Shown here one piece after another: positions 4,433 through 55,337 of a stretch of DNA of 64,000 bases. The stretch lies in NCBI GenBank assembly GCA_043228905.1, contig JBHGNT010000021.1, positions 5,890,001-5,954,000 on the forward strand, in the 5' to 3' direction. The notes beneath the pieces are model-generated. The model saw only the letters and a program-made list of their open reading frames with translations. It had not been told where the DNA came from and searched no databases. The DNA is from Azolla caroliniana (lineage: Eukaryota > Plantae > Polypodiophyta). Positions within the stretch are counted from its first letter, which is position 1; each line of letters begins with the position of its first letter. The position numbers and the translations under genes are program-made.

Positions 4433-6373
4433 TTAATTATCTTCCTGTATATGCATATCTTGGGTTTGATAACGTATGATATCTCCAGTAGAAAATGGAT
4501 AAACATTTCCATTTGAATCAATCCATGTACTATTCACTAGGCTCTTGCAAAGAGCCAATTTATTTCTCATGGTGTCAACCTTTTGTGCATCCTCCTGCAA
4601 GCCAGCAGCTATATAAATGCTAGCCATAAGGACATAGACTGCAGCACAAGTATTATCTAGTTGTACAGTCTGATCAAAAGCCAATCTTCCAAGCTTCACA
4701 TTTCCCCATTTCTTACAAGCAGCCAATAAAGCAACCCAAACTGGGTGGCAGTCGAAAGATTCCATTGTCTTAATCACTGAGATTGCTTTATCGAATTGAC
4801 CAGAACACCCAAAAATCATGACCATGCAAGTATGGTGTTCAATACTTGGTGAAATGCCATATTTATTGCTCATACTTAGATAATATGTTTCAGCCTCATC
4901 CATTAGTCCTGCATGGCTACATGCATTAAGCACACACAGAAAAGTCACTGAATTGGGTGAGAGGCCATCCCTTTCCATCCTTTCCAGACACTTCAATGCT
5001 TCATAACCTTGACTGTGTTGTGCATACCCTGCTATTAGGGCAGACCAAGAGACCACATTTCTAACAGGAAGATCTTCAAGCACTTCTTGTGCTTTTGCAA
5101 GTGCACCACATTTGGCATACATGTCCACCAAAGCAGTGCCGAGCACGATGTTATTTGCTATCAAACCTCGATTTACAATCTCATTGTGAAACTTCTTACC
5201 TTTATCAATAGCTCCAATGTGTCCACATGCTTTCAAGATACAAACAAAGGTAATCTCATCTGGGAAGAAGTTCTCACTTTGCATACGTTCAAAACAGTTC
5301 AATGCTTTGTGACCTTGCCCCCCTTCTACATACCCTGCAATAAGCACTGACCAAGAAACTTTATTTCGAAGTGGTAGCTCTTCAAGAACTTTATGCGCTA
5401 TTGCAATATCACCACATTTGACATACATATCTACCAAAGTGGTGCCAAGCATGATATTGTTCTTCAACAAACCCCTACTTATAACCTCATCATGAATATG
5501 TTTGCCTCTATCTATAGCTCTAATGGCACCACAAGACTTCAAGATGCAAACAAAGGTGATTGCATCTGGAGAAAATCCTTGGTTTCTCATATGTTCGAGA
5601 CAGTTCAGAGCTTCATAACCTTGTCCTTGTTGTGCATATCCTGATATAAGTGCATTCCATGAGACTACATTTCGAACACGAAGTTCATCATGAACTTCTT
5701 GTGCTTTTGCAAGCATACCACATTTGGCATACATGTCCACCAAAGCATTTCCAAGGACAATATCATTATCTAGCAAACAAGACGTCACAATCTTATCATG
5801 AATTGCCATGCCTTTGTCAATAGCTCGTATGCTACCACAAGCTTTCAAGATGCAAGAAAAGGTGATTGCATTTGGTGTGAGACCTTCCCTTTGCATTTGT
5901 TCGAAAAAGTTCAGCGCTTCATGGCTTTTTCCTTGTTGGGCATATCCTACAATAAGTGAAGACCAAGACACCACATTCCGAATTGGAAGCTTATCATGCA
6001 CTTGGTGTGCTTTGGCAAGCATACCACATTTAGCATACATATCAACCAAGGCATTTCCAAGCACAACATTGTCATGTAACAAGCCCTTATTAATTATATC
6101 ATTGTGAATTTCCTTCCCTTTGTTGATAGCCCTTAAGATCCCACATGCCTTTATTATATACACCAATGTAGCTACATCAGGAGAGGCACCATCATTTTGC
6201 ATTTGTTCAAAACAATTCAATGCTTCATAAGCTCTTCCTTCCTGGGCGTACCCAGTTATAAGTGATGACCAAGTTGCTAGATTTCTGAAGAGAATCTCAT
6301 GTAAGGCTTGTTGAGGTTTTTCAAGCATACCACTTTTTCCATACATGGTGATCATACCGTTGTCTAATTTCAA
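4433..6373 (-). CDS. PLS-class PPR protein (E/E+ subgroup); 5' end uncertain, possibly frameshifted
   Basis: 646-aa ORF with the same PLS triplets, E motif (WVALLAACKKWGN) and E+-like tail (STWIDSNGNVYPFSTGD). The track start is a TTG, and PPR-like sequence continues upstream in another frame. Confidence 0.88.
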   Translation of the reverse strand: MKLDNGMITMYGKSGMLEKPQQALHEILFRNLATWSSLITGYAQEGRAYEALNCFEQMQNDGASPDVATLVYIIKACGILRAINKGKEIHNDIINKGLLHDNVVLGNALVDMYAKCGMLAKAHQVHDKLPIRNVVSWSSLIVGYAQQGKSHEALNFFEQMQREGLTPNAITFSCILKACGSIRAIDKGMAIHDKIVTSCLLDNDIVLGNALVDMYAKCGMLAKAQEVHDELRVRNVVSWNALISGYAQQGQGYEALNCLEHMRNQGFSPDAITFVCILKSCGAIRAIDRGKHIHDEVISRGLLKNNIMLGTTLVDMYVKCGDIAIAHKVLEELPLRNKVSWSVLIAGYVEGGQGHKALNCFERMQSENFFPDEITFVCILKACGHIGAIDKGKKFHNEIVNRGLIANNIVLGTALVDMYAKCGALAKAQEVLEDLPVRNVVSWSALIAGYAQHSQGYEALKCLERMERDGLSPNSVTFLCVLNACSHAGLMDEAETYYLSMSNKYGISPSIEHHTCMVMIFGCSGQFDKAISVIKTMESFDCHPVWVALLAACKKWGNVKLGRLAFDQTVQLDNTCAAVYVLMASIYIAAGLQEDAQKVDTMRNKLALCKSLVNSTWIDSNGNVYPFSTGDIIRYQTQDMHIQEDN

Positions 6374-19683: not shown

Positions 19684-22600
19684 TGTCGTGAAGATCCGTC
19701 ACTACGCGCGGATCGTGAGGCGGAACCGCCGGGGTTCTGGACCAAAAGGATTTAGAGTCGATACAAGCTTTGGCGAGAAAGTACTTAAGATAGATTGGGA
19801 AAGAGAGAAGTTGAGATTACACGATTGAGAGAGATTGATTGAACTTTTAACTTTAGATTTAAGAAACAAGTTACACGATCAATTTGATAACGAATTTCTT
19901 CGTCTTAATTTTCATAAAAAAAACCGTGTTTTTTCTCCTCCCCCTTCCCTCTTTTATAGATGCTCTCATGCATATGATGCATGTGAGGGTACAAGACATG
20001 CATAAATTGCATGTTTGCCATTTGGCGCTTATGTATTACATGTGGTGCATGATAACCATGTCACTCATTTTAGTTCTCATGTATGAGAATTTACATGTAA
20101 AAGTACAATGATAGAAATATAATTTCAACTAAATAGCATGGTTTAATGGTAAGCCAATTGACTCCTAACTTGGAGGTGCAAGGTTTGAATCCTTACTTGC
20201 CCTCCTTGTATATGTAAATATGTATATATATTTATATATTTATTTATCTAGTCGCCGGACGCCGGTTCGCCGGATACTGTCGGTTACCGGTGCCTCGCCA
20301 GATGCCGTCGCGAGATGCCGTCGGATCACCGGCTCCATCGTCGGTCCGGTTTTGGTTGGCCAAAACCCTTTATGAGTAGCTAGCCCACCTCCACTCTTAG
20401 TTCAAGTTACCTTGAACTCTCTATTCTCCACACATAGACACAAAGATAATATCTTTTGCTCCACCTTATATATGATGAGAGCTGTATTTGTCGTGCCTAT
20501 GTGGGATATCTCACAATTTTCTCCTTTCCTTTTACAAACTTTATACCCTCATATCTTGACATTTAGTTGTCCGTTTCTCGTGTAATAAAGTGCATTCGAA
20601 ACGTCCATCCTTTTGTACTTAGATAAAAAATGTTATCTTCACAATTATTGTATTATGTGATTCATACTCGATTTCGTACGTTTTATGGGATTTTCACACT
20701 ATTGCCGAAAATCTTCACGACATCCACCCCCACCAAACCGCGCGTCCTTCGGTACGTGCCAAGAAGAGAAGAAGTGAGATTTCGGCTACGATGATCAATT
20801 AGATTCCTCCATGTCTTCATTTTTATCCGGCCTATTATGTTCATCGTCGAGGTAATCGAGGTCAGGATCCTTGTCTTGTCTTTTCTTGAAAAGCTTTACT
20901 CTTTTTCCCGCAATGGGTACGACCAACCTTGATCCGTCTAGTTCCACAAGGTGGTATGTGGCATTATCGTTGGCACTTGTCACCACATACGGCCCGAACC
21001 ATCTTCTTGCGAACTTCCTTGTTGTACTGTGTTGATTGTCAAGGGTGCTGTCGTAAACCAAAACCCAATCCCCTTCTTCAATCTTCTTGGGACGAAGTCG
21101 ATGTGTGTTGTCGAACCGAACTTTGTTCTTTACTCGGGTTGCCTTCATCATCTTTCGCGCTTTTTCTAAATCTTCAGGTCTTCTTTCAAGTTGCCTTATC
21201 CGCGCCACTAATAACTCTTCTCGGCTCATCTCGTTCTCCCACGGTATTGCTACCCATGAGGCGATCGTCCTTTCGATGGGCATAATCGGCTTTTGTCCAT
21301 ATATAAGCTCCGTCGGCATATACCCTGTCACCGAGCTATGTGTCGTTCTATCGGCCCACAAGGCATAGGGTAATAGTCGTGGCCAATTCCCGACTCGACT
21401 GTTGCATGCCCGTACGATGGCTTTAATGATAGGTCCATGCACTCGCTCGATCTTCCCATTTGCTTCCGGATTGTAGGCAGTCGTGAGGGAGAGCTTCACG
21501 CCTAGTCTTTCGAAGAGCTCCGTCGCTTCGTGCGCGTCCAACTCCCCTCGGTCGGCCACTATCTTCCCTACACATCCATATCGGCAAACAACATCTTCAA
21601 GTAAAAATTTACAAACGGCTGAAGTCGTCTTATTTGTCAAGGCTCGTCCTTCCACTTGATTTGTCAAGTCTTCCCTTGCCAGCGCTAAGTACTTCATTTG
21701 TCCCACTCCCATTGGCATGGAGACCAGATCCACCATCCATTTGAAGTGAATGGTGAGTGGGTATGTCGGCTTTAATTCATCACGATGACGTATATTTGAG
21801 TATATTTGGCAAGTTTCACATGTGGACACGAAATGGAGTACATCTTTGTACATGCTTGGCCACCAGTACTTCTCCTTCAATTTTTCAAACGTCGCCCATG
21901 TTCCTCTATGACCTGCCCAAGCACTCTTGTGGAATTCGATCATCAGCGTCTCTTGCTCTTCTTTCTTTACCACCACTCGACGTGGTATTCCTGTCCTTCT
22001 TTTTGGATGTCGCCAAATGAATCCTCCCTTCAAGAAGTATCGGTAAGCTTTCTTTCGGATTCGTAGGGCCTCCTCCTTTGTCAACGAAGCATCTGTCGTC
22101 AATGTTCTTAGGAATCTACCGATGAGTAACCATTCTCCTTCGTACTCGTTCTCGTTGAAGGTGTGGAGGGTTTGCGTGTCCTGGTCTTCCGCCGACAATC
22201 GAGCCATCTTGAAGAAGTTGAGGGCGACATCTTCATCTTCCGAAACCATGTTACTTCCATTTGAAAATCTTGCCCTTGACAGCATGTCAGCCATGGCGTT
22301 CTTCTTCCCTGCGATGTGACGGATCTCTGGGTTTAAAGACTTGATGTAGGCGATCCACCTTAGCATAGCAAGATCTGGGGTCGCACATCCCGAGACCATT
22401 CCGAGAATTGGGAGACAATCTGTCTCTATTATCACTCTGACCCGATCAGGTAATCTTTGTCCGTCTTCACTACCGACACAATACCCCAAAGTTTCCGCTT
22501 GACTTGGGCATATCTTTGTTGCCGTTCGTTGAGAACCTTTGCTCCGAACCGGACAGCATATCGCGCATTATCTTCACCTTCTTGATTGATGACCCACCCG

Positions 22601-32600: not shown

Positions 32601-34435
32601 TTGTCGAATCGCCTCTCGAAGGCTCGCACAATCCCTTCTCATGTGGTCCATGCTATCGCACCACACGCATCTAAAGGGTTCTTTTCCTTTAGGGCCCCGA
32701 CGATTCATGTTGGCTAGCGTGACCTTCTTGAACTTCTTCGCTAGCTCTTCAATCATGTCGTCATCAATCTTCTTTTCTTCCACGTTACTTTGTCTCAGCG
32801 GCTCAGCTACTTTCGGCGGTCTTGCTTTCTCCGTGGTAGTCGGTCCCGTCAAGTCGGTGTCATCAACCCATTGGCGACGCTTGTCGAGCCTATTGCATGC
32901 CCACTTCACCGCGATCCAATCCGCTATGAGCCCATTTGCTTGGGTATCATCTTTGAGAAGAGTCCCCAACTCCCGTCTATCCTTTATGTCCATAGCCTTC
33001 AAGAAGTACAAAGTCTTGTCCTCTTCAAGCAATACTTGATCCGTATTGGGGAGACGACTAAACATCTGGTCGAATTCGTCGTACACCCTCGAGACGCTCA
33101 TCTTCTTATTCTTCTTCTCTATCCACTTCATTAAGGCATGTCGAGTCATCCTCGTTGAGTCTTCAGTCACGAACTCCGCTAGTATCGTTTTCTCGAACTC
33201 GGACCATGTTGTCTTTCCTTCTTGAAGCTCGATGACGCGTCTTTGGATGTTGTTGGCGACAACTCTCTTGAAGCTTGCGATTTGACGTGCCTCGGACACG
33301 TCCCTTTGATTCATCTCCCTCTTATATGCATCAAGGAACTTCGTAACGTTCCTTCCATCGAATTGGCCCTCGAGCTCTACGACACGATCGACAGCCTTCT
33401 CCACGCTCGTGTCGTTGTCCCGAGATCTCATCATTTGCTCGACGATTAGCATCATCCTTTCGAGCTCTCCTGCTTGGTTGCTTGAGGACGCCATCTCCAA
33501 GTATTAATCTCGACTTGATCCTTCCTACCGCCTCTTTCACGTCGGGTTCACCACTTAATTATGTCGTGAAGATCCGTCACTACGCGCGGATCGTGAGGCG
33601 GAACCGCTGGGGTTCTGGACCAAAAGGATTTAGAGTCGATACAAGCTTTGGCGAGAAAGTGTTGAGAACTTGACGTTCCTTATGTCCAACGCTCGGCCAC
33701 AACCGAGATTCTTTACATACACAGAAAAAACAGGTAATGAAACGCGACACAAAAAAAAGAGGAGAAATGGTACACAGGAGGTATACGTGGAAAACCCCAA
33801 AATAGGGGAAAAAACCACGGCAGCCCACAAGCTGCAAACTGTCACTATGTAGAAATATACAACAGTGAGATCACTGAGGCAACGACCTCGTGCTCTCGGA
33901 TCTTCGCCACAGGCGGCGGTTACAACAGAGGCAACGACCTCGTCTCTCTCTCTCTCTCTCTGTACAGTTACGTGCTCTGATTTCTTCTTGCACCAACAAC
34001 AAAGAATCACTACTACTCCCTAAGAAAAACTAAAAGTTTGCCCTAAGTCATATTTATACTAATATGACTTTTCGGCTATTTACAAATGTAGCCTCGATGG
34101 GCTCCATCCGGCTCTCCGCAGTCGGGTACTCCTCATCCGGTTCATACCGGGCCTACACCATCCGACTCTCCGCAGTCGGGTACTCCTCATCCGGTTCATA
34201 CCGGGCCTACACCATCCGACTCTCCGAAGTCGGGTTCTCCCCATCCGGTTCATACCGTTTCTTTAGTACTTGTGGGCCGTATGGCCTAAGCGAGGAGTGC
34301 GAGCGTATAACCTTCGGCGGTTGGATAGTTAGGGTAAATAGTATGGTAACTAAAGAATAGTATAAAAGAGAGTAGTAGGGGAGGAGAAGAGAGAGAGAGA
34401 GAGAGAGAATTCAAATTTCAATTTATGTAAGAAAA

Positions 34436-34488
34436 GGTCTTTTGGCAAACATGTTTCGCTCTATTTGAGCTCATCAGTGCTAAAGACC
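34436..34488 (-). ncRNA. Minimal type I hammerhead ribozyme
   Basis: Minus strand reads GGUCUUUAGCA-CUGAUGA-GCUC(AAAUA)GAGC-GAAA-CAUG-UU^UGCCAAAAGACC: intact core, stem II, palindromic minimal stem III (ACAUGU), stem I. Confidence 0.88.
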
Positions 34489-34714
34489 ATATACAAAAAT
34501 GTGAGAGGCTTATATAGGGGAAGATGCAAGAAGAGTGAAGGGGAGTGGTGGGTATGGATGAGAGGGGATTTGAATGTGTATAAAGGAGGATGTGGGAGTT
34601 AGGGAGGTAGTGAATGTAGAGAGGGATAGCTTAATGAGTTTGATGGTAAGGGATGATTTGGGGATCTATTATATTTAGTTCTAGTAGAATGATAGCAATA
34701 GTAAGTGTGATGTT

Positions 34715-36640
34715 TTAATGAGGATTTGGGGATCTAATATATTTAGTTTTGACTAGATAAGAATAGAGTGATTTGGACTTGGTCCAACATATGAAAGGCT
34801 TAGGAATGTTTTTTAGTTGGGGATCTAGGCTAAGGTCGGTGTGTAAGTCTTTTAAGAACGAGTGGATACCTAATTTAGGGGAGTTTTTAGAGTACCTAAG
34901 CTTGAATATGGTAGGTGTAAGGGAAGATTTGTTTTTATGCTTATGGATGAGAGTATTCCTAAGGGAGAAAGGATGTTTATTAAAGGCTTTAAGGATGAAA
35001 TTTGGTGGGTAACCTCGGCTAATGAGTCTAAGGAAGAAACGTTTTTTCATTTCTAGGTACCCTATAGGTGTGCTTTCTCTAACTAGGTAGCGTTTTAATT
35101 CGTTCGAAATAAAATTTTGTTTGACGTGTATAGGATGGTCTGAGGAGAAGGGAAGATATTGATAGGAATTTAATGGTTTTTGGAAACAATTGAAAGAGAA
35201 CTTAGAGTACTCTAGATTGATCCAAATATCCAAGAAAGGGAGCCTAGTGGGGGATGTATGGATCGTAAGTTTAATAGAGTTATTGGTCATAAGGCTATAG
35301 AAACTGAGGTAGTCTAAGAGTTGGGGTTTCGTACCTGTCCAAACCCCGAATGCATCATCTATGTACCTAGTAAAATAGAAGAGATGGGGTGTGGTTTGTG
35401 AGTTTTCTAGGTGTGATAAGAAAAGGCATGCATAGACAACTGAGAAGTTGCTACCCATGGCCGTTCCTTTGATTTGTTGGTATACTTGGTTATCGAAGGT
35501 TAGATAGTGATACTCTAGGGTTAGAGCGCTAAGGGTATAGATAAGATTGGTCTTGGCTAAGGAAAAATGGGGAGAGATGATATGGCGAAGTGCTTTGAGT
35601 CCTAACTTAGGGGGGATGCTAGGATAAAGGGATTCTACATCAAAAGAGAAGATGAAACTGTTAGGAGGGGGGGTTAGTTGTTCTAGTTTCTGGATGAGTG
35701 AGTGTGAGTCTTTTAGGTATTGTTTTTGGAGTACTAGGATGGGTAATAGTTGAAAATGTAGCCATTTCGAGGTTTGCTCGAATATCGAGTTATTATAAGA
35801 ACAGATGGGTCTAAAGCTAATGGGTGTTTTATGGAGTTTAGGGAGAAAGTAAATATTAGATACTTGATATCCCTTTACAGGTTTATGGAGTATGTAATTA
35901 GCTTCGATAAATGAAAGTGTCCCTAGATTTTTTTGCACTATACTATTTAGGCGATATAAGAGTTCTTCTAATGGAAAATGGGTTACTTTTCTATAGGTGG
36001 TGGTATCCGAGAGGTGATTTATAGCTTTTTCATAATAGGTATCTTTGTCTAGAACACATACTCCCATGTTCTTATCAGCCGGAAGAACGATAATTTGGTT
36101 GTTTTTCCTAAGGCTCTTAAGGGCTGTGCGAAGGTGAAATGGTGTCCTAACGGGTTTGGGTTTAGGTTGTTGGAGTTTAGACAAAAGGAGGGTTTCATGT
36201 TTTTTAATAATATTTTCAAGAGGGGGATATTGAGATGGTGGATTCCAGTTAGGATTTGGTAGTTTAAATGGATTAAGGGGGGGTGAGTCCATGTCTCTAA
36301 AGAAATGTTTTAAACGTAAAGATCTACTTAAACTGGCAAATTCTTTAATGATAGTATTAGTGGAAGGTAGAGAGGATGGTGGAATGTATTTGAGTCCTAA
36401 GCTTAGTAATTGTGTTTCATTATTTGTAAGGGGGTGTTTAGATAAATTGTGAATTTTACTTTCTATTCGAAGGGTAGCACTAAGTGGTTTCCAAAACTTT
36501 TTTCGTAGTCTATTACTATTGGATTTTTTATGGCGTGGGCGGAAGGGGAAAGATGTATTTGTATTACCTAACCACATAAAAGTGTCTGGGGTGGAGGTGG
36601 TCCTATTAAGAAGATAAAATAGGCGTCTACAAGGATGCAC
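34715..36640 (-). CDS. Penelope-like reverse transcriptase (ORF2; no AUG start, probably expressed by -1 frameshift)
   Basis: PLE motifs HNLS..LT...LLSLGLKY, VLPADKNMG, YFLPKLHK, FRPICS, SFDVESLYPSIP, QQIKGTAMGS, RYIDD, PFLD, YLPFSSDHP, RGYP. Stops right after the thumb; no GIY-YIG follows. Confidence 0.93.
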   Translation of the reverse strand: MHPCRRLFYLLNRTTSTPDTFMWLGNTNTSFPFRPRHKKSNSNRLRKKFWKPLSATLRIESKIHNLSKHPLTNNETQLLSLGLKYIPPSSLPSTNTIIKEFASLSRSLRLKHFFRDMDSPPLNPFKLPNPNWNPPSQYPPLENIIKKHETLLLSKLQQPKPKPVRTPFHLRTALKSLRKNNQIIVLPADKNMGVCVLDKDTYYEKAINHLSDTTTYRKVTHFPLEELLYRLNSIVQKNLGTLSFIEANYILHKPVKGYQVSNIYFLPKLHKTPISFRPICSYNNSIFEQTSKWLHFQLLPILVLQKQYLKDSHSLIQKLEQLTPPPNSFIFSFDVESLYPSIPPKLGLKALRHIISPHFSLAKTNLIYTLSALTLEYHYLTFDNQVYQQIKGTAMGSNFSVVYACLFLSHLENSQTTPHLFYFTRYIDDAFGVWTGTKPQLLDYLSFYSLMTNNSIKLTIHTSPTRLPFLDIWINLEYSKFSFNCFQKPLNSYQYLPFSSDHPIHVKQNFISNELKRYLVRESTPIGYLEMKKRFFLRLISRGYPPNFILKAFNKHPFSLRNTLIHKHKNKSSLTPTIFKLRYSKNSPKLGIHSFLKDLHTDLSLDPQLKNIPKPFICWTKSKSLYSYLVKTKYIRSPNPH

Positions 36641-36694
36641 GGCGTGTCTAAAGTGTTTGTTAACACGCTTAGCACGCCGTGCTAGTCGTTTTTT
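36637..36694 (-). promoter_or_regulatory. Programmed -1 ribosomal frameshift signal between PLE ORF1 and RT
   Basis: In-frame A_AAA_AAC (36694-36688), 5-nt spacer, hairpin GCACGGCGUG-CUAAG-C-GUGUU(AACA)AACAC-UUUAG-A-CACGCCGUGC; the -1 frame is open into RT. Confidence 0.82.
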
Positions 36695-38949
36695 GGTCGG
36701 CTAGAAGGTGGGTTCCTATGGTGTGTGGTAGGGGGAGGATTAGTGGAGTGTGGTGTATTTCTATAATGTTTATGATTAGGATAGGAGGGAGGGGTGGTGT
36801 GGTGGGTGAAGGGGGTTTTTATATTAGAGAGGGGATAATAAGAAGGAGGTTTATTAAGATACGAGGGAGGGGTAGAGTATGAGTTAGAGGGGGGGGTTTC
36901 AACAAATGGGGTAAAGAAAAGTGGGGGGGACGAATGAAAATTAGATAAAGGAGGGGGAGGGGTAGTATGTGAATTAGGGGCAAAATAGGGGGGGGCATGA
37001 GTTAGATTATCGGGAAGTAATGCAGGGGCATGTATGAGATATGGAAATAATTGAGAGGGAGAGGGGAGGGGAGGAGGCATTTGTTCATAGAGGCTGCCTC
37101 CATATGAAGACAAAGGGGGATGTGAGGAGGGAACAAAGAAATGGGAGTAATTAGGGTTCTGAAAACGTTGTTGGTGAGGCTGTTGTGAGCATGGATGAGG
37201 GGTGGGAAGGAGGGGCGGCGCGAATGTGTGTTGGCTGCCTTGCGCAGTCCCAAATAACGCACCATGTAGGGAGGGGGGAGGGTGCACGAGATGGCTGTCC
37301 AACACAGTCCCATACTCATTTACAATAGGGGGGGGGAACGATTGATGAAAGAGGCCGCGATCAACCGTGACATGTTGCTGGTTATTGTGCAGTGGATCAC
37401 GTTTCTGTGATGTCCAATTATTGTAGGGCGTACCATGTGTACGGCGGAGAAGGGGCGGCGGCGGGAAGTTTTGTTGGCGGCTTTGATTCGTAACAGAGTG
37501 TTGAAATTGTTGTCTTGTAATGTTTGGCAGGTGCGGTTGACGATAGTATGGTGGATGGAGCTCGGGGACGGTGTTAGGAGCCGGAGGACTTATATGCGCG
37601 GGGAGATGACCGAGGCCTATCGTTGCGAAAGCTTGTGGTGAGCGAGAATGGTGCGGTTCATTATTGGCAAAGTTTGGGTTATGAAAAAGAACTTGAGGCC
37701 CTCCATGGTTGGGATAAGGTTTAAATGCTTGTTTAACCTCATTAGTTGCGGTGTTGCAGGTGAAAAGGAGGTTAGATGCTCGATGACGAGGACGTTGCGC
37801 TTGTTTGGAGTTATTATTGGAGCGGTGGTTTGGGTTAGGGTGAGAGTTAGGAAAAGGGTTAGTGGTATTTTTGGAATTAGAGTTAGTGTTTCGGTTAGAC
37901 TTAGGTTCTGGATTAGGGTTTAGGGTAAAGTTTAGATTCTTTTTGGGGTTGGGTGTGGGTGTGTGATTAGAATTTTTATTTAGGTTAATAGTATGGGGGA
38001 CAGAATCTTTAGTGTTATTTATCTCGGCTTCTACGGGAGCAATGTACGAGGGACTGTCATAAAACATTTCATTATCATTTTCTTCTTCCCCTTCATACAT
38101 TGTAATGTCTATATCTCTAATATTAGGGTTTTCATATCTATTTTGTGCTCTTGTTTTATCTCTAAGTTCCGTGGCCGTTCTCTTAAGTGTATCATCAATG
38201 TTGTGATTTAGTGCAAAATCATCACACATTTTTAGGATTTTAGAGCCGAAATCTTGTAGTAACGTATTAATCGTTTCTTGAAAATTAGCCGGCTCAACAT
38301 ATGATGATACATCCTCAAAATGTTGGGGTTCTTGAAGGATGTTAGCAAAGTTATGTAGATCCGATCTAACGGTATTAGGGAAATTATCTAGGGTTTTAGT
38401 ATAGGAGTGCACTAGTAAGTCTAGATGTTTAATATAACTACTTGTTAGATCTTTATTATATTGATTAGTGAGGGTTAGAAAGTCCTTATGCATGCTATTG
38501 TTAATTTCTTCATGATCTATCTTTAGCTTGGGGGGATGAATTCTAAGACTATTAGGGGTTAATTCATGAGAGTATAAGTTCAACATCCTATTATGGGTAT
38601 TTTTGGCTTGTTTCTTTCTTTTGAAGAGTTGTTTAAATTCGACGAATACTCTAGTTTTATATTCTTCTAAGTATTTTGAGCAAAATGATGTATTAGAAGA
38701 TGATACCTTAGTATTGGAAACCTTAGTATCAGGAGTGGAGTTGATGAGTGATGGAGAGAGAATATAATCTCGAGCACGCTTTTGTGGTCTTTTATTCGCA
38801 CTATTACGCTTGATAGGGGTCGGTGTAGCCGATGCCATCGCTGCAGACGTCATTACCGTGGGTTGAGGGAACTCTTCACTAGATGGTTGCCCGAACATTG
38901 TCGATGCAGATCCATTGTGGGTTCCTATCTCCGGTGAATGAACCTCCAT
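36682..38949 (-). CDS. PLE ORF1, 755 aa: helical/basic N-terminal half, then Asn-, Pro- and His-rich low-complexity region
   Basis: Uninterrupted ORF starting 14 nt after the 5' pseudo-LTR; the TPNSLRI segment resembles PLE N-terminal regions; function inferred only. Confidence 0.75.
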   Translation of the reverse strand: MEVHSPEIGTHNGSASTMFGQPSSEEFPQPTVMTSAAMASATPTPIKRNSANKRPQKRARDYILSPSLINSTPDTKVSNTKVSSSNTSFCSKYLEEYKTRVFVEFKQLFKRKKQAKNTHNRMLNLYSHELTPNSLRIHPPKLKIDHEEINNSMHKDFLTLTNQYNKDLTSSYIKHLDLLVHSYTKTLDNFPNTVRSDLHNFANILQEPQHFEDVSSYVEPANFQETINTLLQDFGSKILKMCDDFALNHNIDDTLKRTATELRDKTRAQNRYENPNIRDIDITMYEGEEENDNEMFYDSPSYIAPVEAEINNTKDSVPHTINLNKNSNHTPTPNPKKNLNFTLNPNPEPKSNRNTNSNSKNTTNPFPNSHPNPNHRSNNNSKQAQRPRHRASNLLFTCNTATNEVKQAFKPYPNHGGPQVLFHNPNFANNEPHHSRSPQAFATIGLGHLPAHISPPAPNTVPELHPPYYRQPHLPNITRQQFQHSVTNQSRQQNFPPPPLLRRTHGTPYNNWTSQKRDPLHNNQQHVTVDRGLFHQSFPPPIVNEYGTVLDSHLVHPPPSLHGALFGTAQGSQHTFAPPLLPTPHPCSQQPHQQRFQNPNYSHFFVPSSHPPLSSYGGSLYEQMPPPLPSPSQLFPYLIHAPALLPDNLTHAPPYFAPNSHTTPPPPLSNFHSSPPLFFTPFVETPPSNSYSTPPSYLNKPPSYYPLSNIKTPFTHHTTPPSYPNHKHYRNTPHSTNPPPTTHHRNPPSSRPKND

Positions 38950-39085
38950 GTGATATGTCGAATCTTTAGTACTTGTGGGCCGTATGGCCTAAGCGAGGAG
39001 TGCGAGCGTATAACCTTCGGCGGTTGGATAGTTAGGGTAAATAGTATGGTAACTAAAGAATAGTATAAAAGAGAGTAGTAGGGGA

Positions 39086-39130
<45 letters not shown>

Positions 39131-40699
39131 AATTTCAATTTATGTAAGAAAAGGTCTTTTGGCCTACACCATCCGACTCTCCGCAGTCGGGTACTCCTCA
39201 TCCGGTTCATACCGTGCCTACACCATCCGACTCTCCGAAGTCGGGTTCTCCCCATCCGGTTCATACCGTTTCGGCCTCGGCCGAGTTTGTTCGTCGGCAC
39301 TGTTCTTCTCCCTTCCCATCCGGAGGGACCTGTCTACCAACAGAAAGTACTTAAGATAGATTGGGAAAGAGAGAAGTTGAGATTACACGATTGAGAGAGA
39401 TTGATTGAACTTTTAACTTTAGATTTAAGAAACAAGTTACACGATCAATTTGATAACGAATTTCTTCGTCTTAATTTTCATAAAAAAAACCGTGTTTTTT
39501 CTCCTCCCCCTTCCCTCTTTTATAGATGCTCTCATGCATATGATGCATGTGAGGGTACAAGACATGCATAAATTGCATGTTTGCCATTTGGCGCTTATGT
39601 ATTACATGTGTTGCATGAAAACCATGTCACTCATTTTAGTTCTCATGTATGAGAATTTACATGTAAAAGTACAATGATAGAAATATAATTTTAACTAAAT
39701 AGCATGGCTTAATGGTAAGCCAATTGACTCTTAACTTGGAGGTGCAAGGTTCGAATCCTTACTTGCCCTACTTGTATATGTAAATATGTATATATATTTA
39801 TATATTTATTTATCTAGTCGCCGGTTCGCCGGATGTCGTCGCCGGATACCGTCGGATCACCGGCTCCATCGTCGGTCCGGTTTTGGTTGGCCAAAACCCT
39901 TTACGAGTAGCTAGCCCACCTCCACTCTTAGTTCAAGTTACCTTGAACTCTCTAGCTCCACACATAGACACAAAGATAATATCTTTTGCTCCATCTTATA
40001 TATGATGAGAACTGTATTTGTCGTGCCTATGTGGGATATCTCACAATTTTCTCCTTTCCTTTTACAAACTTTATACCCTCATATCTTGACATTTAGTTGT
40101 CCGTTTCTCGTGTAATAAAGTGCATTCGAAACGTCCATCCTTTTGTACTTAGATAAAAAATGTTATCTTCACAATTATTGTATTATGTGATTCATACTCG
40201 ATTTCGTACGTTTTATGGGATTTTCACACTATTGCCGAAAATCTTCACGACAACGCCGCCAACAAATCCTCCTATTCCTCCTTCTTCGCCACCACTCGGA
40301 GCGGGATGCCGTTCCTCTTCTTCGGGTGCTTCCATATGTATCCGTCCCGGAGAAAGAATCGGTAGGATTTCTTCCGAATCCGGTTGGCCTCGTCCGTTGT
40401 CCATGCCGCGTCCGGTGTCATTGTTTTCAAGAACCCGCCGATCTGCAGCCACTCCCCGTCGTACTTGCTCTCGTCGAAATCGTTAAGCATTGGAGAGCAT
40501 TCCTTGCCGGTGGTTACGTGAGCCGCCTCGAAGAAGTCCACGCCGACTTCCTCGTCCTCTGAAACCATGCCGCCGTCGTTTTCAAACCTCGCCCTTGAAA
40601 GCATGTCGGCCATGGCGTTGTCTTTCTCGGAAATGTGTCGTATTTCCGGATTCAGAGACTTGATGTACGCTATCCACCTGAGCATTGCCAGGTCCGGCG

Positions 40700-48500: not shown

Positions 48501-49389
48501 TCGAGCACCTCCGTATGGATACCCGGCATCGCCACTCGAGGGAATCCGGCTAGACGCCTCTCTTCCGGAATGTCCCTCATTACCATCTCAGCCCGGTAGG
48601 ACGCCAAGTAGCTCGTGGCATCCTTCCCACTAAACCGACCGATCGTACAGAAAACCGCCTCGATAGCCCTATCAAGGGCGTCGGTGCCTTCGCGCGCACT
48701 CACTATACGGTCTACAGCCGAAGCCATGGCTTCTGCAAGGTCCGACCCCCTCATCTTCTACTCCTCTGCCGCTTGTTCACGTCGGGTTCTCCAAATATGT
48801 CGCGTTGTTACACGCGTGCGTGGAGAACAAGGCGGGACCACTGGGGTCTTGGACCGAGGAATAGGTGAGGAAAGAGAGAGAGAGAGAGACGCTCACTCAC
48901 GTATAGACAAAGAAGCGCACGGGGACGCGGCACAACAACACAGGAGACGCGAGTTGAGAACACTAGAGTATGTATGTAGACGACTCGAACGGTTACAGCC
49001 GATCAGGTCGGCGAGGTGGATGCCGACGCCTGATCACCCACGCACACAGGAGAGCAAGATGGAGATTCTGCCGGAAGCGCATGGGCGTTCCACGGAGCAG
49101 AATCAGCCTCCTGAGAACCTGCGCAAAAGAAAGCTATGGAGAACGACAGAGAAGAAGAGCTCGGTCCCAGTCTGACAGCACTTCGTTCCTTCTAGCGTGC
49201 AATATCTTCTCTCCCCCGTCTCCCTCTCTTTTATAGCTCAAGGAGGGAGGTCGTTTCACCCGTTTACATCACATTAATTCTCTGTCCTTTCGGACAGAGA
49301 TACTCCTCGATTTCCCTTATAGAATATTGTTGGGATTTCGGTCCCTCCGGATGGGATGTCCGGAGATGAATGACGGCAAGCCCGGTTGC

Positions 49390-49525
49390 GGTTACGGAAC
49401 CGGATGATGAAGACCCCGGTTACGGAACCGGATGATGAAGACCCCGGTTACGGAGCCGGATGATGAAGACCCCGGTTACGGAACCGGATGATGAAGACCC
49501 CGGTTACGGAACCGGATGATGAATG
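49390..49525 (+). repeat. 28-bp tandem repeat in copia U3 (about 5 copies in the 5' LTR, 2 in the 3' LTR)
   Basis: Unit ggttacggaaccggatgatgaagacccc; the LTR length difference 647-563=84 equals 3x28. Confidence 0.93.
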
Positions 49526-50005
49526 TACCCGGAGAGAGATCCGGATGCGGAGACATATTTGTGAATATGTTTGCCAAGAGCCCTTGAGGCTATATTTGTA
49601 AATAGCCCGAAAGTCATATGTGTATAAATATGACTTAGGGCAAACAGTTTTATGTTGTTGCTCATTTTTCATGAGAAGTGAGAGCAGCCGAGAGAGAGAG
49701 TGAGAGACGAAGAGGTCGTTGCCTCTGTGTAATACCGCCGCCTGTGGCGAGGACAGCGAGCTCAAGGTTGTTGCCTTGTAGCCTCACCATTGTACATCTC
49801 TGTGTATAGTGATAGTTGGAGTTAGAGGACTCCCGTGGTTTTTTCCCATTTAGGGTTTTCCACGTAAACATCCTGTGTGCTCTTCTCTCTGTTGTTCTTC
49901 GTGCATTCTTGTATTTCCCGTTTTCTGCGAATCGATCCTGTTCCTCGGTTGTGGCCGAGCACGGAATTGCAACAAATTGGTATCAGAGCGACGGTAACAC
50001 AGAAA

Positions 50006-53000
50006 ATGGAAGGCGCCGGTAGTGGGCCTCCGGGCATGATGGTGCTGAATGCGCAGAATTACGCCGACTGGAAGATCAAGATGGAGGATCTTCTGATTGT
50101 TCGGGACCTGTACGAACCGATTGACAGGTCGGAAATACCGAAGGGGGTACTTGAGTCGGAGTGGAAGCTCCTGAACCGGAAAGCCGTAGCGACGATCCGA
50201 CAATATGTCGATGTAAGCGTTCTACAGCATGTGGCGAACGACACCAACGCATATGAGATGTGGCGGAAGCTGTCGGGCCTCTATGAGAGGAAGAATGCGT
50301 TGAACCGGACCTCCCTGATGAGGAAGATAGTGAACCTCAAGTACCGGGACGACGAGAGTATGGTGGAACACGTAAGCACGTTCATGGGATTCGTGAACCA
50401 GCTTGCGGCGATCAAGTTCCCGTTGGAGGATGCAATGCAAGCCATCATCCTGATGTGTACATTGCCGGACAGCTGGGAGAACTTGGTGGTGACTCTCAGC
50501 ACCTCCTGCACCGAAGATAACTTGTCTCTACAAACGGTAAAGACAAGTATTTTGAACGAAGAAGCGCGTCGGAGAGATAAAGAACCGGTCTCCGACTCGA
50601 AGGCGCTGCTTACCGAATCGGAACGGGGAAGACAGTGGAACCGGAGTCCGCAAAGACGGGAGAAGTCGGGGACCCGGTCGCAGTCAAGAGGAAGGCCAAC
50701 ATGCTTCCACTGTGGGAAGCCGGGGCACTTCCGGAAGAATTGTCGGCATTACCGAAAGGACAACGGAGCCGACGACACCGATTCGAAGAAGTCACCGGAG
50801 AGAAACGGTGCATACCGGGGAGCCACGGACCGGAGAGGTCCGGATCGGCGAGGGCAGGACCGGAAAGGAACAACGGCACTCGCGGCAAGTGAGGAAGAAA
50901 TCATGCTCATCACCGAAGAATGTGAACTAAACGTAGCCGGCGATGAGACGACCTGGGTGGTCGATTCCGGAACATCGTTCCACCTGACCCCGGAGAGAAG
51001 ATACTTCTCATCCTACACAGCCGGTGAGCATGGCTGTGTTCGGATGGGGAATGAAGGTACGTGCCGGATTGCCGGCATAGGAGACGTGTGGTTGACAACC
51101 CCGACCGGATGCAAAATGCTGCTGAAGGATGTTCGACACGTTCCGGAGGTTCGATTGAACCTGATTTCGGCCGGGAGGCTAGACGATGAAGGCTACACGG
51201 GTAGCATCCGGAACGGTGTCATGAAGTTCAGCAAAGGGAGCCTGATAGTGGCTCGGGCCCGGAAGGTCAACACCCTGTACCTGATGAATTCCCGGCTCTG
51301 TCCGGAGGAGCTGAACGTGGCAGCCGACACTGCCGGTGAGCTGTGGCACAAGAGACTGTGCCACATGAGTGAGAAGGGGATGAAGAGGCTTGCAGAAGAC
51401 AACCTTATTCCAGTGAAGCATGTGCACCTGGAGAAGTGCACCGACTGCCTGGCCGGTAAGCAAAACCGGACCTCTTTCCACTCAAGGCCACCGACGAGAC
51501 GTAGCGCACCATTGGAGCTGGTGCACACTGATGTGTGTCAGGTAGAAACGAAGTCACATGGCGGAGCCCAGTACTTCGTGACATTCATTGATGACCACAG
51601 CCGGAAGCTGTGGACGGCACCGTTGAAGACAAAGGACCAAGTGTTGTCCGTCTTCAAAGAACTCCACGCGAGAGTGGAAAGGGAATCCGGCAAGAAGCTG
51701 AAAGCGATACGAGCGGATAACGGAGGGGAATACCGGGGGCAGTTCCAGGAGTACTGTCGCTCGAAGGGAATCCGGCTCGAGTTTACTGTGCCGAAGACGC
51801 CGGAACTGAACGGGCTGGCCGAGAGGATGAACCGGACCATAATGGAGAGGGTCCGGAGTATGCTGGCGCATGCGAAATTACCCAAGGGGTTTTGGGCTGA
51901 GGCGATGTCGACGGCGACATACGTGATAAACAGATCACCCTCAGTACCTTTGGACGGAGACACGCCGCAGAGAGTGTGGACCGGTAGGGAAGTATCCTAC
52001 CGGCATCTGAAGGTGTTCGGGTGTCTCGCATACGTGCATGTGGCAAAGGACCGGAGAGGAAAGCTAGATCCAAAGACCCGGCCATGCATATTCCTCGGTT
52101 ACGGTGACGACGAGTTCGGCTACCGAGTATGGGACCCGGTCGACAAGAAGATATTCAGGAGTCGAGACATCATCTTCATGGAGGACAAGACACTCGCCGA
52201 CTGGGAGTCGGAGAAGAAGATGAAGAGCTCAAAGTCGACCGGTGAGGATCAACTCTACGAGGAGCAGTCCCGACCGGCAAGGGACCGGTTAGCACTCGAG
52301 GATCCGGCCGAAGACGGTGAAGAAACAGAACCGGCCGAAGAAGATGAAAATGATACCGGAACCGGCCCCGATCCCGAAATGGATTCCGATGAAGAAGAAG
52401 AATCGGAAGAACCGGTTACCGAAGCTCCCGAACGGAGATATCCTCTAAGAGAGAGAAGGGCCCCCCGGAGATTTCCGGAACCAGAGCACGTGCTGCTAAC
52501 AGACGAGGGGGAGCCGGAAAGTTTTGAAGAAGCAAAACATGACACCCAGAGCCGCAGGTGGTTGAGTGCCATGCAGGACGAGATGGATTCCCTGCATGAG
52601 AATCACACATATGAACTTGTGGAGTTGCCGAAAGGAAAGCGGGCACTTCGAAACAAGTGGGTGTTCAAGCTGAAACCGGGAGATGCCGGAAACCCCCCGA
52701 GATACAAAGCCAGGATCGTGGTGAAGGGGTTTCAGCAAAAGAAGGGCGTCGACTTCGACGAGATATTTGCCCCGGTAGTGAAGATGACCTCCATCCGGAC
52801 GGTGCTGAGCATAGCAGCAAGCATGGACCTCGAGGTAGAACAGATGGACGTGAAGACGGCATTCCTTCACGGTGACCTCGAAGAAGAGATCTACATGCAG
52901 CAACCGGAAGGATTCGAGAAGAAAGGGAAGGAGCACCTGGTATGCCGGTTGAAGAAGAGCCTTTACGGACTGAAGCAGGCTCCCCGGCAATGGTACCGGA

Positions 53001-54082
53001 AGTTCGACTCCTTCATGACCGACGAAGGGTACCACAAAACGCAGTCTGATCACTGCGTGTTTGTGAAGAAGTTTGAAGGAGGAGACTCTCTAATACTCCT
53101 CCTGTACGTGGACGACATGTTGATCGTCGGACGGGACCAGGTCAAGATACGGATGCTGAAGAAGGCTCTTCACCGAACCTTCTCAATGAAGGACTTGGGC
53201 CCGGCGAGACAAATACTAGGGATGCACATCATCCGGAACCGGAGCAAGAAGCAGTTGTGGCTGTCACAGGAAAAGTACGTGACAAAGGTGCTTAAACGGT
53301 TCAACATGTCGGAAGCAAGACCGGTCGGATCGACCCTCCCGGCAAACTGCAAGTTGTCCAGCAAGCAAAGCCCCAAGACAAAGGCTGAGAAGGAGGACAT
53401 GATGAAAGTACCATATGCCTCTGCTGTCGGAAGCTTGATGTACGCAATGGTGTGTACAAGACCAGACATTGGATACGCAGTCGGAGTGGTGAGCCGGTAC
53501 ATGAGCAATCCCGGCAAAGAGCATTGGAACGCGGTCAAGTGGATACTCCGATACCTGAAGGGCACGGCAAACGTGTGCCTCCGATTCGGCTCCGGTAAGC
53601 CTGAACTCGACGGCTTCACCGATTCGGATATGTCGGCTGATGCAGATACCAGCCGGTCCACATCAGGGTATGTGATGACCTATGCAGGGGGAGCCGTTTC
53701 GTGGCAGTCGAGGCTGCAGAAGACGGTTGCGTTGTCAACCACGGAGGCGGAGTACATGGCAGCTGTTGAAGCCGGCAAGGAAATAATATGGATGAAGGAC
53801 TTCATTAGAGAGCTCGGTATCCAGCAGGAGGAGTACCGACTCTACTGCGACAGTCAGAGTGCCATCCACCTTGCGAAGAACGCGGCTTATCACTCCCGGA
53901 CGAAGCACATCCAGCGAAGATATCACTGGATCCGGGAAAGGATAGAAGACAAGGAGTTCGAGCTGACGAAGGTCCACACGGACGAGAACGGGTCAGATAT
54001 GCTGACCAAGGTGCTCACACCCGACAAGCTGGAAGCATGCCGGAAGAGGATCGGACTGGAGAGACATCCCATGCCGAAGTGA
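50006..54082 (+). CDS. Copia Gag-PR-IN-RT-RNase H polyprotein, 1358 aa
   Basis: CFHCGKPGHFRKNC, WVVDSGTSFH, WHKRLCH, VHTDV, IRADNGGEY, QMDVKTAFLHG, SLYGLKQAPRQW, LYVDD, TRPDI, STTEAEY, RTKHI; no stops. Confidence 0.96.
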   Translation: MEGAGSGPPGMMVLNAQNYADWKIKMEDLLIVRDLYEPIDRSEIPKGVLESEWKLLNRKAVATIRQYVDVSVLQHVANDTNAYEMWRKLSGLYERKNALNRTSLMRKIVNLKYRDDESMVEHVSTFMGFVNQLAAIKFPLEDAMQAIILMCTLPDSWENLVVTLSTSCTEDNLSLQTVKTSILNEEARRRDKEPVSDSKALLTESERGRQWNRSPQRREKSGTRSQSRGRPTCFHCGKPGHFRKNCRHYRKDNGADDTDSKKSPERNGAYRGATDRRGPDRRGQDRKGTTALAASEEEIMLITEECELNVAGDETTWVVDSGTSFHLTPERRYFSSYTAGEHGCVRMGNEGTCRIAGIGDVWLTTPTGCKMLLKDVRHVPEVRLNLISAGRLDDEGYTGSIRNGVMKFSKGSLIVARARKVNTLYLMNSRLCPEELNVAADTAGELWHKRLCHMSEKGMKRLAEDNLIPVKHVHLEKCTDCLAGKQNRTSFHSRPPTRRSAPLELVHTDVCQVETKSHGGAQYFVTFIDDHSRKLWTAPLKTKDQVLSVFKELHARVERESGKKLKAIRADNGGEYRGQFQEYCRSKGIRLEFTVPKTPELNGLAERMNRTIMERVRSMLAHAKLPKGFWAEAMSTATYVINRSPSVPLDGDTPQRVWTGREVSYRHLKVFGCLAYVHVAKDRRGKLDPKTRPCIFLGYGDDEFGYRVWDPVDKKIFRSRDIIFMEDKTLADWESEKKMKSSKSTGEDQLYEEQSRPARDRLALEDPAEDGEETEPAEEDENDTGTGPDPEMDSDEEEESEEPVTEAPERRYPLRERRAPRRFPEPEHVLLTDEGEPESFEEAKHDTQSRRWLSAMQDEMDSLHENHTYELVELPKGKRALRNKWVFKLKPGDAGNPPRYKARIVVKGFQQKKGVDFDEIFAPVVKMTSIRTVLSIAASMDLEVEQMDVKTAFLHGDLEEEIYMQQPEGFEKKGKEHLVCRLKKSLYGLKQAPRQWYRKFDSFMTDEGYHKTQSDHCVFVKKFEGGDSLILLLYVDDMLIVGRDQVKIRMLKKALHRTFSMKDLGPARQILGMHIIRNRSKKQLWLSQEKYVTKVLKRFNMSEARPVGSTLPANCKLSSKQSPKTKAEKEDMMKVPYASAVGSLMYAMVCTRPDIGYAVGVVSRYMSNPGKEHWNAVKWILRYLKGTANVCLRFGSGKPELDGFTDSDMSADADTSRSTSGYVMTYAGGAVSWQSRLQKTVALSTTEAEYMAAVEAGKEIIWMKDFIRELGIQQEEYRLYCDSQSAIHLAKNAAYHSRTKHIQRRYHWIRERIEDKEFELTKVHTDENGSDMLTKVLTPDKLEACRKRIGLERHPMPK

Positions 54083-55337
54083 AGGGGGAGTTTGTTGGGA
54101 TTTCGGTCCCTCCGGATGGGATGTCCGGAGATGAATGACGGCAAGCCCGGTTGCGGTTACGGAACCGGATGATGAAGACCCCGGTTACGGAACCGGATGA
54201 TGAATGTACCCGGAGAGAGATCCGGATGCGGAGACATATTTGTGAATATGTTTGCCAAGAGCCCTTGAGGCTATATTTGTAAATAGCCCGAAAGTCATAT
54301 GTGTAAAAATATGACTTAGGGCAAACAGTTTTATGTTGTTGCTCATTTTTCATGAGAAGTGAGAGCAGCCGAGAGAGAGAGTGAGAGACGAAGAGGTCGT
54401 TGCCTCTGTGTAATACCGCCGCCTGTGGCGAGGACAGCGAGCTCAAGGTTGTTGCCTTGTAGCCTCACCATTGTACATCTCTGTGTATAGTGATAGTTGG
54501 AGTTAGAGGACTCCCGTGGTTTTTTCCCATTTAGGGTTTTCCACGTAAACATCATGTGTGCTCTTCTCTCTGTTGTTCTTCGTGCATTCTTGTATTTCCC
54601 GTTTTCTGCGAATCGATCCTGTTCCTCGGTTGTGGCCGAGCACGGAATTGCAACAAATATTGCTACTTAGGATTTCACCTTTGTGCCTACCTATCTACTA
54701 TACGACAAGGGAAGTGCCCACGTGTAAGGGCCGGTTCACACACACTATACACGGTTTGCGCCTGGGGACGGTTTTCTTCACGACAACATGGAAACCCTGA
54801 ACGGGAAAAACCACGGGAGCCCACAGACTCCAAACTATCACTACGTAGAAAGAATACAACAGGGGGCATAGAGGCAACAACCTCGTGCTCACTCTCTCTT
54901 CACCAGGCGGTGGTTACAACAGAGACTTACTTTGTTTTTGTCTCTCTCTCTCTCTCTCTCGCTCTTTCTCTTCCTCTTCTTTTGTTACACTTTGTACAAT
55001 AGTTACACCAATACCACTATACAAAACAATGACAACATAATGATACACACACATCACTCTGTTTGCCCTAGGTCATATTTATACTAATATGACATTAGGA
55101 CTATTTATAGATATAGCCCCAATGGGCTCTCAGAAACATATTTCCAGATATGTCCCTTCATCTAGTGAGAGGTTCTCACCGGGCCTGCGTCATCCGGTTC
55201 TCACCAGGTCTTCCTTGCCGGGTACTCATCATTTGGTTCTCACCGGGTCTTCCATACCGTGTACTCATCATCCGGTTCTCATCGGGTCTGTGTTGCCGGG
55301 TTCTCATATCCCATCCGGAGGGACCGAAATCCTAACA

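Follow-up and report, generated by a model that had tools for sequence, protein, structure and literature searches.

An apparently recent interstitial copy of an endonuclease-less Penelope-like element in the fern Azolla caroliniana

We analyzed a 64,000-nt stretch of contig JBHGNT010000021.1 from the Azolla caroliniana assembly GCA_043228905.1 (positions 5,890,001 to 5,954,000). This whole stretch is called the window here, and its coordinates are used throughout unless a locus identifier (L001 to L030) is given. The minus strand of the window carries, at positions 34260 to 39163, a Penelope-like element (PLE) with a reverse transcriptase (RT) and without a detectable nuclease. It is probably a coding-intact and very recent interstitial copy of an endonuclease-less (EN-) PLE that belongs to an ancient EN- lineage of streptophytes, of the Coprina type. 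An initial annotation made from the letters alone had described the element in the same terms, and its bounds proved exact. It had also put the element forward as an undescribed system, and this did not hold up, as the combination of a coiled-coil ORF1, a frameshift, a hammerhead ribozyme (HHR), and an RT without an endonuclease is already in the literature (PMC8557442). What appears to be new from the sequences is a fern family of EN- PLE that is interstitial and lacks telomere-complementary repeats, on a core design that had been published before.

The element has the general features of a PLE, namely, an RT of the PLE/telomerase branch with N-terminal motifs and thumb, pseudo-long terminal repeats (pLTRs), and an HHR in the repeat region (Table 1). 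Both open reading frames (ORFs) are uninterrupted at the 755 and 641 aa first reported, and they are real rather than chance ORFs because two so long carry thousands of bits of homology. The pLTRs have the length of about 190 to 200 nt that is in keeping with the pseudo-LTRs of PLEs. They are 100% identical over 149 nt, and the number of TC units is the sole difference between them, as the initial annotation had noted for the dinucleotide run. The 5′ pLTR begins at G 39163, which is the first position homologous to the 3′ copy and is equivalent to 34446. Between the stop codon of ORF2 and the HHR lie 224 untranslated nucleotides that hold a TATA box.

ORF2 encodes a PLE RT with a telomerase-like predicted fold. 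A search among 5.8 billion proteins returned 144 relatives, the nearest of which (64 to 94% identity) are metagenome proteins; the nearest named relatives are from Cryptomeria (40%), Ginkgo, Selaginella moellendorffii (38%), and Closterium (about 33%). The N-terminal PLE motifs, ADKN, motif A (FDVESLY), motif B (GTAMG), motif C (YIDD), and the thumb are all intact. A structural model based on 26 sequences (predicted local distance difference test [pLDDT], 84.8) has telomerase TERTs as its best matches in the PDB (3du5; E = 6e-13), followed by the RTs of LINE-1, group II introns, and R2. Searches by sequence gave a weak match to RVT_1 alone in Pfam, generic RTs only in a profile search of the PDB, and no match in the PDB with ORF2 by itself; an exact look-up of the window proteins also gave no match. 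The ratio of nonsynonymous to synonymous substitution rates (dN/dS) for ORF2 is 0.13. The homologues, the model, and an alignment to an endonuclease-bearing (EN+) PLE thus agree with the PLE-type RT first proposed.

The same comparisons locate the missing domain. Protein P0033, from an EN+ PLE, aligns with ORF2 over P0033 residues 4 to 588 (31% identity in 597 columns) and then continues with a linker and, at residues 649 to 730, a GIY-YIG domain, whereas ORF2 stops at the boundary between RT and linker. In precomputed domain hits, the ORF2 homologues carry DUF8422 and HTH_animal, and the farther ones carry GIY-YIG (PF01541); this domain is found in none of the 32 closest of the 144 homologues and appears in remoter matches. 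Pfam searches detected neither GIY-YIG nor any other nuclease in ORF1 or ORF2, in accordance with the initial claim that the motif is absent after the RT thumb and at both N termini. Structure prediction, which had been suggested as a check, returned no nuclease fold, with only helices for ORF1 and no domain beyond the RT for ORF2. The element has no room left to encode a nuclease, and the description of an EN- PLE in a land plant stands, in this case a fern.

A cryptic nuclease might nevertheless be encoded, with the disordered portion of ORF1 and the initial 80 residues of the ORF2 frame as possible places for it. These 80 residues could not be modeled, nor could about 60% of ORF1, and ORF1 homologues are very few, with 20 among 1.84 billion representatives. 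However, the candidate regions are of low complexity, vary in length, and are poorly conserved between families (dN/dS of 0.41), and the conserved part of ORF1 is purely helical and is without a match in Pfam or the PDB, which makes a hidden nuclease very unlikely.

ORF1 is predicted to encode a helical or coiled-coil protein under selection, followed by a disordered tail. Its structural model shows helices at residues 88 to 269 and nothing more, and conservation among the fern families is limited to residues ~80 to 270. The remainder is of low complexity and variable length, and the protein outside the helical domain is disordered, with many P, N, H, and S residues. Comparison of the model with the PDB gave only nonsignificant helical bundles (best E = 0.28), and profile searches of the PDB and Pfam with ORF1 gave no match. 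The relatives come from an exhaustive HMMER search, and one of them (25% identity) sits directly upstream of another PLE RT. This homologue, together with dN/dS values of 0.09 in the helical domain and 0.41 in the tail, indicates that ORF1 is a genuine gene. Degenerate CCCTAA(A) units, translated as PNPN and the like, make up its low-complexity middle. Such telomere-like hexamers within the coding region were seen at window positions 37912 to 37925, at L009:6606-6665, and at L014:844-1413, and they are most numerous in a telomeric family (family C, below). In Closterium, proteins P0027 and P0029 to P0032, annotated at 1000 to 1100 aa, combine in one frame an ORF1-like N terminus, helical and of low complexity, with the RT.

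The element lies inside a Copia-like solo LTR, which lies in turn inside a Ty3/gypsy LTR. It is the innermost and thus the youngest insertion because it splits the solo LTR that splits the Ty3/gypsy LTR. The solo LTR has 73% identity to the LTRs of a Copia element elsewhere in the window (49327 to 54453). There is no telomeric array in the 64 kb or at either junction. The interstitial position, the rank among the innermost insertions of the stack, and the absence of a flanking telomeric array had all been read correctly from the letters. The same is true of recent mobility, which is supported by the identical pLTRs and by a 98%-identical copy elsewhere (L002).

An interstitial EN- PLE could also be what is left of a former chromosome end that came to lie internally, as has been proposed for some such elements, and both a sister family (family C) and a Selaginella relative are joined to (CCCTAAA)n. 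Here, however, the two flanks together make up one solo LTR in one Ty3/gypsy LTR, neither the junctions nor the rest of the 64 kb contain telomeric repeats, and the insertion is young, with identical pLTRs. With the target continuous across the insertion, we rejected this explanation, which we find scarcely credible.

The element is flanked by two copies of a 112-nt sequence that are 99% identical, with 1 mismatch. This is either a target-site duplication that is very long or a preexisting array of 54-nt units in the order A-B-A-B-C. Neither the window nor the 30 loci contain another copy of the 54-nt repeat that could represent an empty site. A preexisting array would suit a different origin, in which double-strand-break repair captured complementary DNA (cDNA) of the element and generated no target-site duplication, the 112 nt being a higher-order repeat of the 54-nt minisatellite. 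The duplicated stretch equals exactly two tandem-repeat units, even the paired LTRs of the related Copia element in the window have unlike numbers of repeats, both junctions show microhomology, as in end joining, and the 112 nt contain 1 mismatch versus 0 in the pLTRs. Against this, the A-B pairs are 99% identical to each other, whereas A and B differ at several positions. We regard capture in break repair as quite possible, although at somewhat less than an even chance.

Table 1. Features of the Penelope-like element and its insertion site in the window
Feature	Position	Strand	Remarks
PLE copy	34260-39163	-	Order 5′ to 3′: 5′ pLTR, ORF1, ORF2, TATA box, HHR, 3′ pLTR
5′ pLTR	38963-39163	-	(TC)20 at 39087-39125; without TATA box and without ribozyme
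ORF1	36682-38949	-	755 aa, uninterrupted
All-helical, coiled-coil-like domain of ORF1	38143-38688	-	Residues ~88-269
Slippery heptamer A_AAA_AAC (-1)	36688-36694	-	In phase with ORF1
Putative frameshift-stimulating stem-loop	36637-36682	-	5-nt spacer after heptamer
ORF2 frame, PLE RT	34715-36700	-	Open from 36700; listed 641-aa ORF at 34715-36640; first ATG at 36577
TATA box TATATAAG	34509-34516	-	28 nt upstream of HHR helix I
Type I HHR	34427-34491	-	Predicted cut between 34448 and 34447
3′ pLTR	34260-34446	-	(TC)13 at 34384-34408; element end ...GTACTAAAGA
Upstream copy of 112-nt flanking duplication	39161-39272	-	Two 54-nt tandem units of solo LTR
Downstream copy of 112-nt duplication	34150-34261	-	Third 54-nt unit at 34096-34149
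Copia-like solo LTR, split by PLE	33661-34260 and 39161-39341		~670 bp; target of PLE
Solo-LTR remainder	33661-34149	-	Other end at 39273-39341
Ty3/gypsy LTR, split	33562-33660 and 39342-40266		Partner LTR at 19684-20737

Relatives of the element were collected in a scan of metagenomes, which gave 26 loci in one series of ENA assemblies. Families A (L002, with 98% identity) and A′ (about 90%) have the same architecture as the window copy. Telomere-complementary repeats are absent from the family of the window copy (window and L001 to L008), and three further 3′ junctions of family A have differing flanks with no telomeric repeats. Insertions of family B are found in a Copia RT (L011) and next to a long interspersed nuclear element (LINE; L009). 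The L011 copy is truncated at the 5′ end within ORF1 and is fused in frame to a fragment of a Copia RVT_2 domain (L011:445-900); the 5′ flank of L009 contains a LINE-like ORF of 1153 aa on the opposite strand.

Family C (68% amino acid identity) differs at its 3′ end, where the HHR is followed by degenerate and then perfect (CCCTAAA)n (L018:5940-6302). The same repeat caps a 5′-truncated copy of this family (L019:1-100), and L014:6127-6207 belongs to the same set of observations. To judge from these junctions, family C is a telomere-attaching EN- PLE from the same samples as the interstitial family. The arrangement of (CCCTAAA)n after the HHR at the 3′ end corresponds to the mode of telomere attachment published for EN- PLEs (PMC8557442). 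A Selaginella locus (P0023; 38% identity) likewise has (CCCTAAA)n and an HHR, together with a 905-aa upstream ORF1. PLE units in tandem were seen in family C and in Cryptomeria.

A maximum likelihood tree, one of the checks suggested at the outset, was built from 50 RTs chosen from the 144 homologues, with no reference Athena, Coprina, or TERT sequences. All streptophyte sequences form one EN- clade (98% support in the Shimodaira-Hasegawa-like approximate likelihood-ratio test [SH-aLRT]), and the EN+ proteins fall in a separate clade. Within the EN- clade, Closterium branches first, followed by Selaginella, by the gymnosperms together with unnamed sequences, and by the ferns, and the fern families branch in the order C, (D, (B, A)), so that the telomeric family C is a sister within the ferns. 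The element is not a recent derivative that lost its endonuclease by deletion, an alternative raised with the initial annotation, because the whole plant clade is without an endonuclease; its sister copies also lack one. On this branching order, internal insertion without telomeric repeats is apparently a derived state in a telomere-associated lineage.

The two ORFs are connected by what has the form of a canonical -1 frameshift signal, which bears out the prediction of a frameshifted ORF1-RT fusion. The frame of ORF2 is -1 relative to that of ORF1. The last codons of ORF1 are CCA AAA AAC GAC TAG, in which the heptamer A_AAA_AAC stands in the correct phase, and the C-terminal residues PKN come from the slippery site. 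The stem-loop downstream has a predicted folding energy of -30.6 kcal/mol (z = -4.9), and 0 of 200 shuffled sequences fold as well. Heptamer, stop codon, and hairpin are kept in families A, A′, B, and C, at nucleotide identities down to 67%, and the heptamer was also seen in L028; L012 and the degenerate copy L020 have mutations in it. Each fern family folds its own hairpin, and the apical stem in family C differs in sequence and register. In the hairpin alignment, 84% of the cells are paired versus 25 to 55% in slid controls. Furthermore, the -1 relation, an in-phase heptamer, and a downstream stem were also found in Cryptomeria, in Selaginella, and in another metagenome element.

Ribozyme processing, also predicted, is supported by an HHR with a putative cut 1 nt from the 5′ end of the element. 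The match is to HH9 of Rfam (27.4 bits; E = 0.0013). The catalytic core is invariant, and 11 of the 14 base pairs of helices I and II show compensatory changes among the fern, conifer, and lycophyte copies. Helix III has no loop and is a palindrome of 6 nt, ACAUGU (34449 to 34454). The versions ACAUGU, ACUAGU, and ACCGGU differ by lineage (also L009:5213-5277, L029:584-653, and L030:4106-4172), and all are palindromic. A palindromic helix III without a loop has been described as a mark of hammerheads that act as dimers (PMC4209133), and a helix III that changes and yet stays palindromic implies that this ribozyme, too, would work as a dimer. TATA box and HHR form the sole noncoding block that can be aligned between families A and B (34522 to 34436 versus L009; 84%), and the TATA box is probably the promoter of source copies.

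Both ends of the element share a few nucleotides with the target. At the 5′ junction these are 3 nt, GCC (39163 to 39161), and at the 3′ junction they are 2 nt, GA. The 3′ ends vary by a few nucleotides between copies (...CTAAAG(A), ...CTAAAGATTC, ...CTGAAG, and ...CTCA), and in the copies compared there is no poly(A) and the flanks differ from copy to copy. Two contigs of family A′ depart from the element within the (TC)n tract of the 3′ repeat (L001:4640-4700 and L006:4130-4170); this could reflect priming at a microsatellite or a mis-join of short reads, and these exits were not used as evidence. In the tandem PLE units of Cryptomeria, a 5S rRNA-like match follows directly after the RT stop codon (L030:3767-3865 and L030:8106-8204), scoring 38 and 32.9 bits where the gathering score is 38.

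Comparison with described PLEs places the element with the EN- group. The design in which ORF1 has a coiled coil and is separable by a frameshift with a pseudoknot is given for EN- PLEs in the legend to Fig. 1 of Craig et al. (2021; PMC8557442), and EN- PLEs with canonical HHRs have been described as well (PMC4209133). The absence of an endonuclease and the coiled-coil ORF1 with a frameshift and RNA structure, which is an optional feature of the group, are both found here; telomeric repeats beside the HHR or 3′ end and, within the 64-kb window, a telomeric location are not. The check for a matching architecture thus turned up the same design in EN- PLEs of the Coprina and Athena types. EN- PLEs of Selaginella, as mentioned in PMC8557442, PMC4209133, and PMC13159263, have been known since 2007 and were filed as Coprina Sm1/Sm2, including in Repbase. 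As for spread outside telomeres, the passage of Craig et al. (2021; PMC8557442) on Chara presents EN- PLE families that are dispersed genome-wide, by a route left unexplained there.

The Coprina elements of fungi, diatoms, and S. moellendorffii (Sm1/Sm2) resemble the window element in having an RT without GIY-YIG, an HHR in terminal repeats, and pLTRs. In addition, the lycophyte relative P0023, whose locus has (CCCTAAA)n, is basal to the fern and gymnosperm clade. However, the window family has (TC)n instead of reverse-complement telomeric repeats, although it keeps a terminal CTAAA; it inserts within other retrotransposons; and it has two ORFs joined by a frameshift where Coprina is usually described with one. 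The Athena elements and the Terminons of bdelloid rotifers, compared without Athena sequences in the tree, likewise have an ORF1 with a coiled coil ahead of the RT, a frameshift with RNA structure, an HHR, and no endonuclease. Athena differs in being rotifer specific and telomeric, with repeats of the (ACACCC)n type and often with extra ORFs.

Other groups are less similar. The Chlamys PLE-X elements of Chara and Selaginella (Craig et al., 2021) also belong to the plant lineage, have no recognizable endonuclease, and have a canonical HHR. However, as members of the Naiad/Chlamys clade, they have a CxC motif, an N-terminal CxCX1-8C extension behind an intron, and an IFD, none of which is present here; ORF2 has no CxC and no large insertion relative to the canonical PLE RT. 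The PLE-X families of Selaginella target 28S ribosomal DNA, whereas the target here is an LTR. The C-terminal GIY-YIG domain that marks the EN+ PLEs (Penelope/Poseidon, including Dryad of conifers, Neptune, Nematis, and Hydra) is missing. Outside the PLEs, endonuclease-independent LINE-1 insertions and group II introns without an endonuclease resemble the element in a borrowed 3′-OH, as proposed for it below, and in microhomology at junctions, and R2 and L1Tc resemble it in a 5′ end of the template RNA that is set by a ribozyme, as is predicted here; all of these have RTs of unrelated clades.

Several observations weigh against parts of the interpretation favored here. The related contigs are short-read metagenome assemblies, which may collapse copies or mis-join at (TC)n. 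Assignment to the Coprina type is suggested indirectly by the EN- relative with telomeric repeats in S. moellendorffii, in a tree without the reference Coprina RTs (Cc1, Pc1, Sm1/Sm2, and others). In a column-wise test, covariation in the hairpin was not above that in shuffled alignments and was not significant, and what we claim for the putative frameshift hairpin is conservation, not proven covariation. The HHR scores below the Rfam gathering score, the placement of the 5′ end at the cleavage site comes from one junction only, and L003, L007, and L009 have longer 5′ pLTRs that include the HHR. The window copy is without a block of TATA box and HHR upstream of ORF1 and so may not be a source copy. 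Finally, the 112-nt duplication could have been in place before the insertion, in an LTR family whose repeat number is unstable.

With these points in mind, a cycle can be proposed for the EN- PLE. Source copies with the TATA box and HHR upstream of ORF1 would be transcribed, and the HHR, needing a second copy for helix III, would remove the leader and set the 5′ end of the RNA. Ribosomes would make the ORF1 protein and, by -1 frameshifting at A_AAA_AAC with the aid of the hairpin, some ORF1-RT fusion of ~1,400 aa. The nuclease-less RT would then extend a DNA 3′-OH made elsewhere, aligned by 2 nt to the RNA end ...CUAAAGA, and would copy up to the ribozyme-made 5′ end, after which the cDNA would be joined to the target at the 3-nt microhomology. 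The use of preexisting DNA ends, which had been part of the initial annotation, is something that we, too, infer. Insertions of L1 that are independent of its endonuclease usually lack duplications, and here a duplication of ~110 nt is possible.

The nick could instead be supplied in trans, with the nuclease of an EN+ PLE or the APE endonuclease of a LINE cutting the target and the PLE RT using the cut. LINE-like ORFs are present in the same host DNA (flank of L009), and a true target-site duplication would follow from two staggered nicks. However, the 26 related loci of the same samples yielded no EN+ PLE, the 3′ ends have no poly(A) or LINE-like tail for LINE machinery to recognize, and a stagger of 112 nt is far longer than the usual LINE duplications; mobilization in trans is therefore unlikely. 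Returning to an RT that primes on ends made without a nuclease of its own, we tentatively suggest, as a possibility that is more doubtful than not, that a telomere-attaching EN- PLE lineage switched to internal integration in ferns. The telomere-complementary repeats would have been lost, nontelomeric 3′-OH ends would have come to serve as primers (for example, nascent strands at forks stalled in structure-prone tandem repeats), and the insertion would have left an exceptionally long target duplication of ~110 bp.

Two other features of the window were recorded. The Copia element at 49327 to 54453 is apparently intact, with a gag-pol ORF of 1401 aa (49877 to 54082); its LTRs are 100% identical over the aligned stretches but differ in the count of 28/56-nt tandem units. 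In the AT-rich part of the window, positions 300 to 2648 and 4433 to 6373 hold two intronless pentatricopeptide repeat (PPR) genes of the PLS class with E motifs. The best named relatives of these genes are fern proteins from Adiantum and Ceratopteris (49 to 54% identity), in keeping with a fern as the host.

No RTs are closer to telomerase than those of PLEs, and EN- PLEs serve as the model for an RT that extends chromosome ends. The host appears to hold two close families, of which one ends in telomere-complementary repeats and the other, without them, sits inside ordinary repeats. If this is true, the telomeric sister family in the same host would provide a natural paired system for primer choice by a telomerase-like RT. 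Comparison of the two families could reveal what steers such an enzyme to a DNA end and how integration into internal sites proceeds without a nuclease. The findings also widen the range of the EN- PLE lineage that has ORF1, a frameshift, and a hammerhead, which now takes in ferns and gymnosperms, where annotation easily misses such elements.

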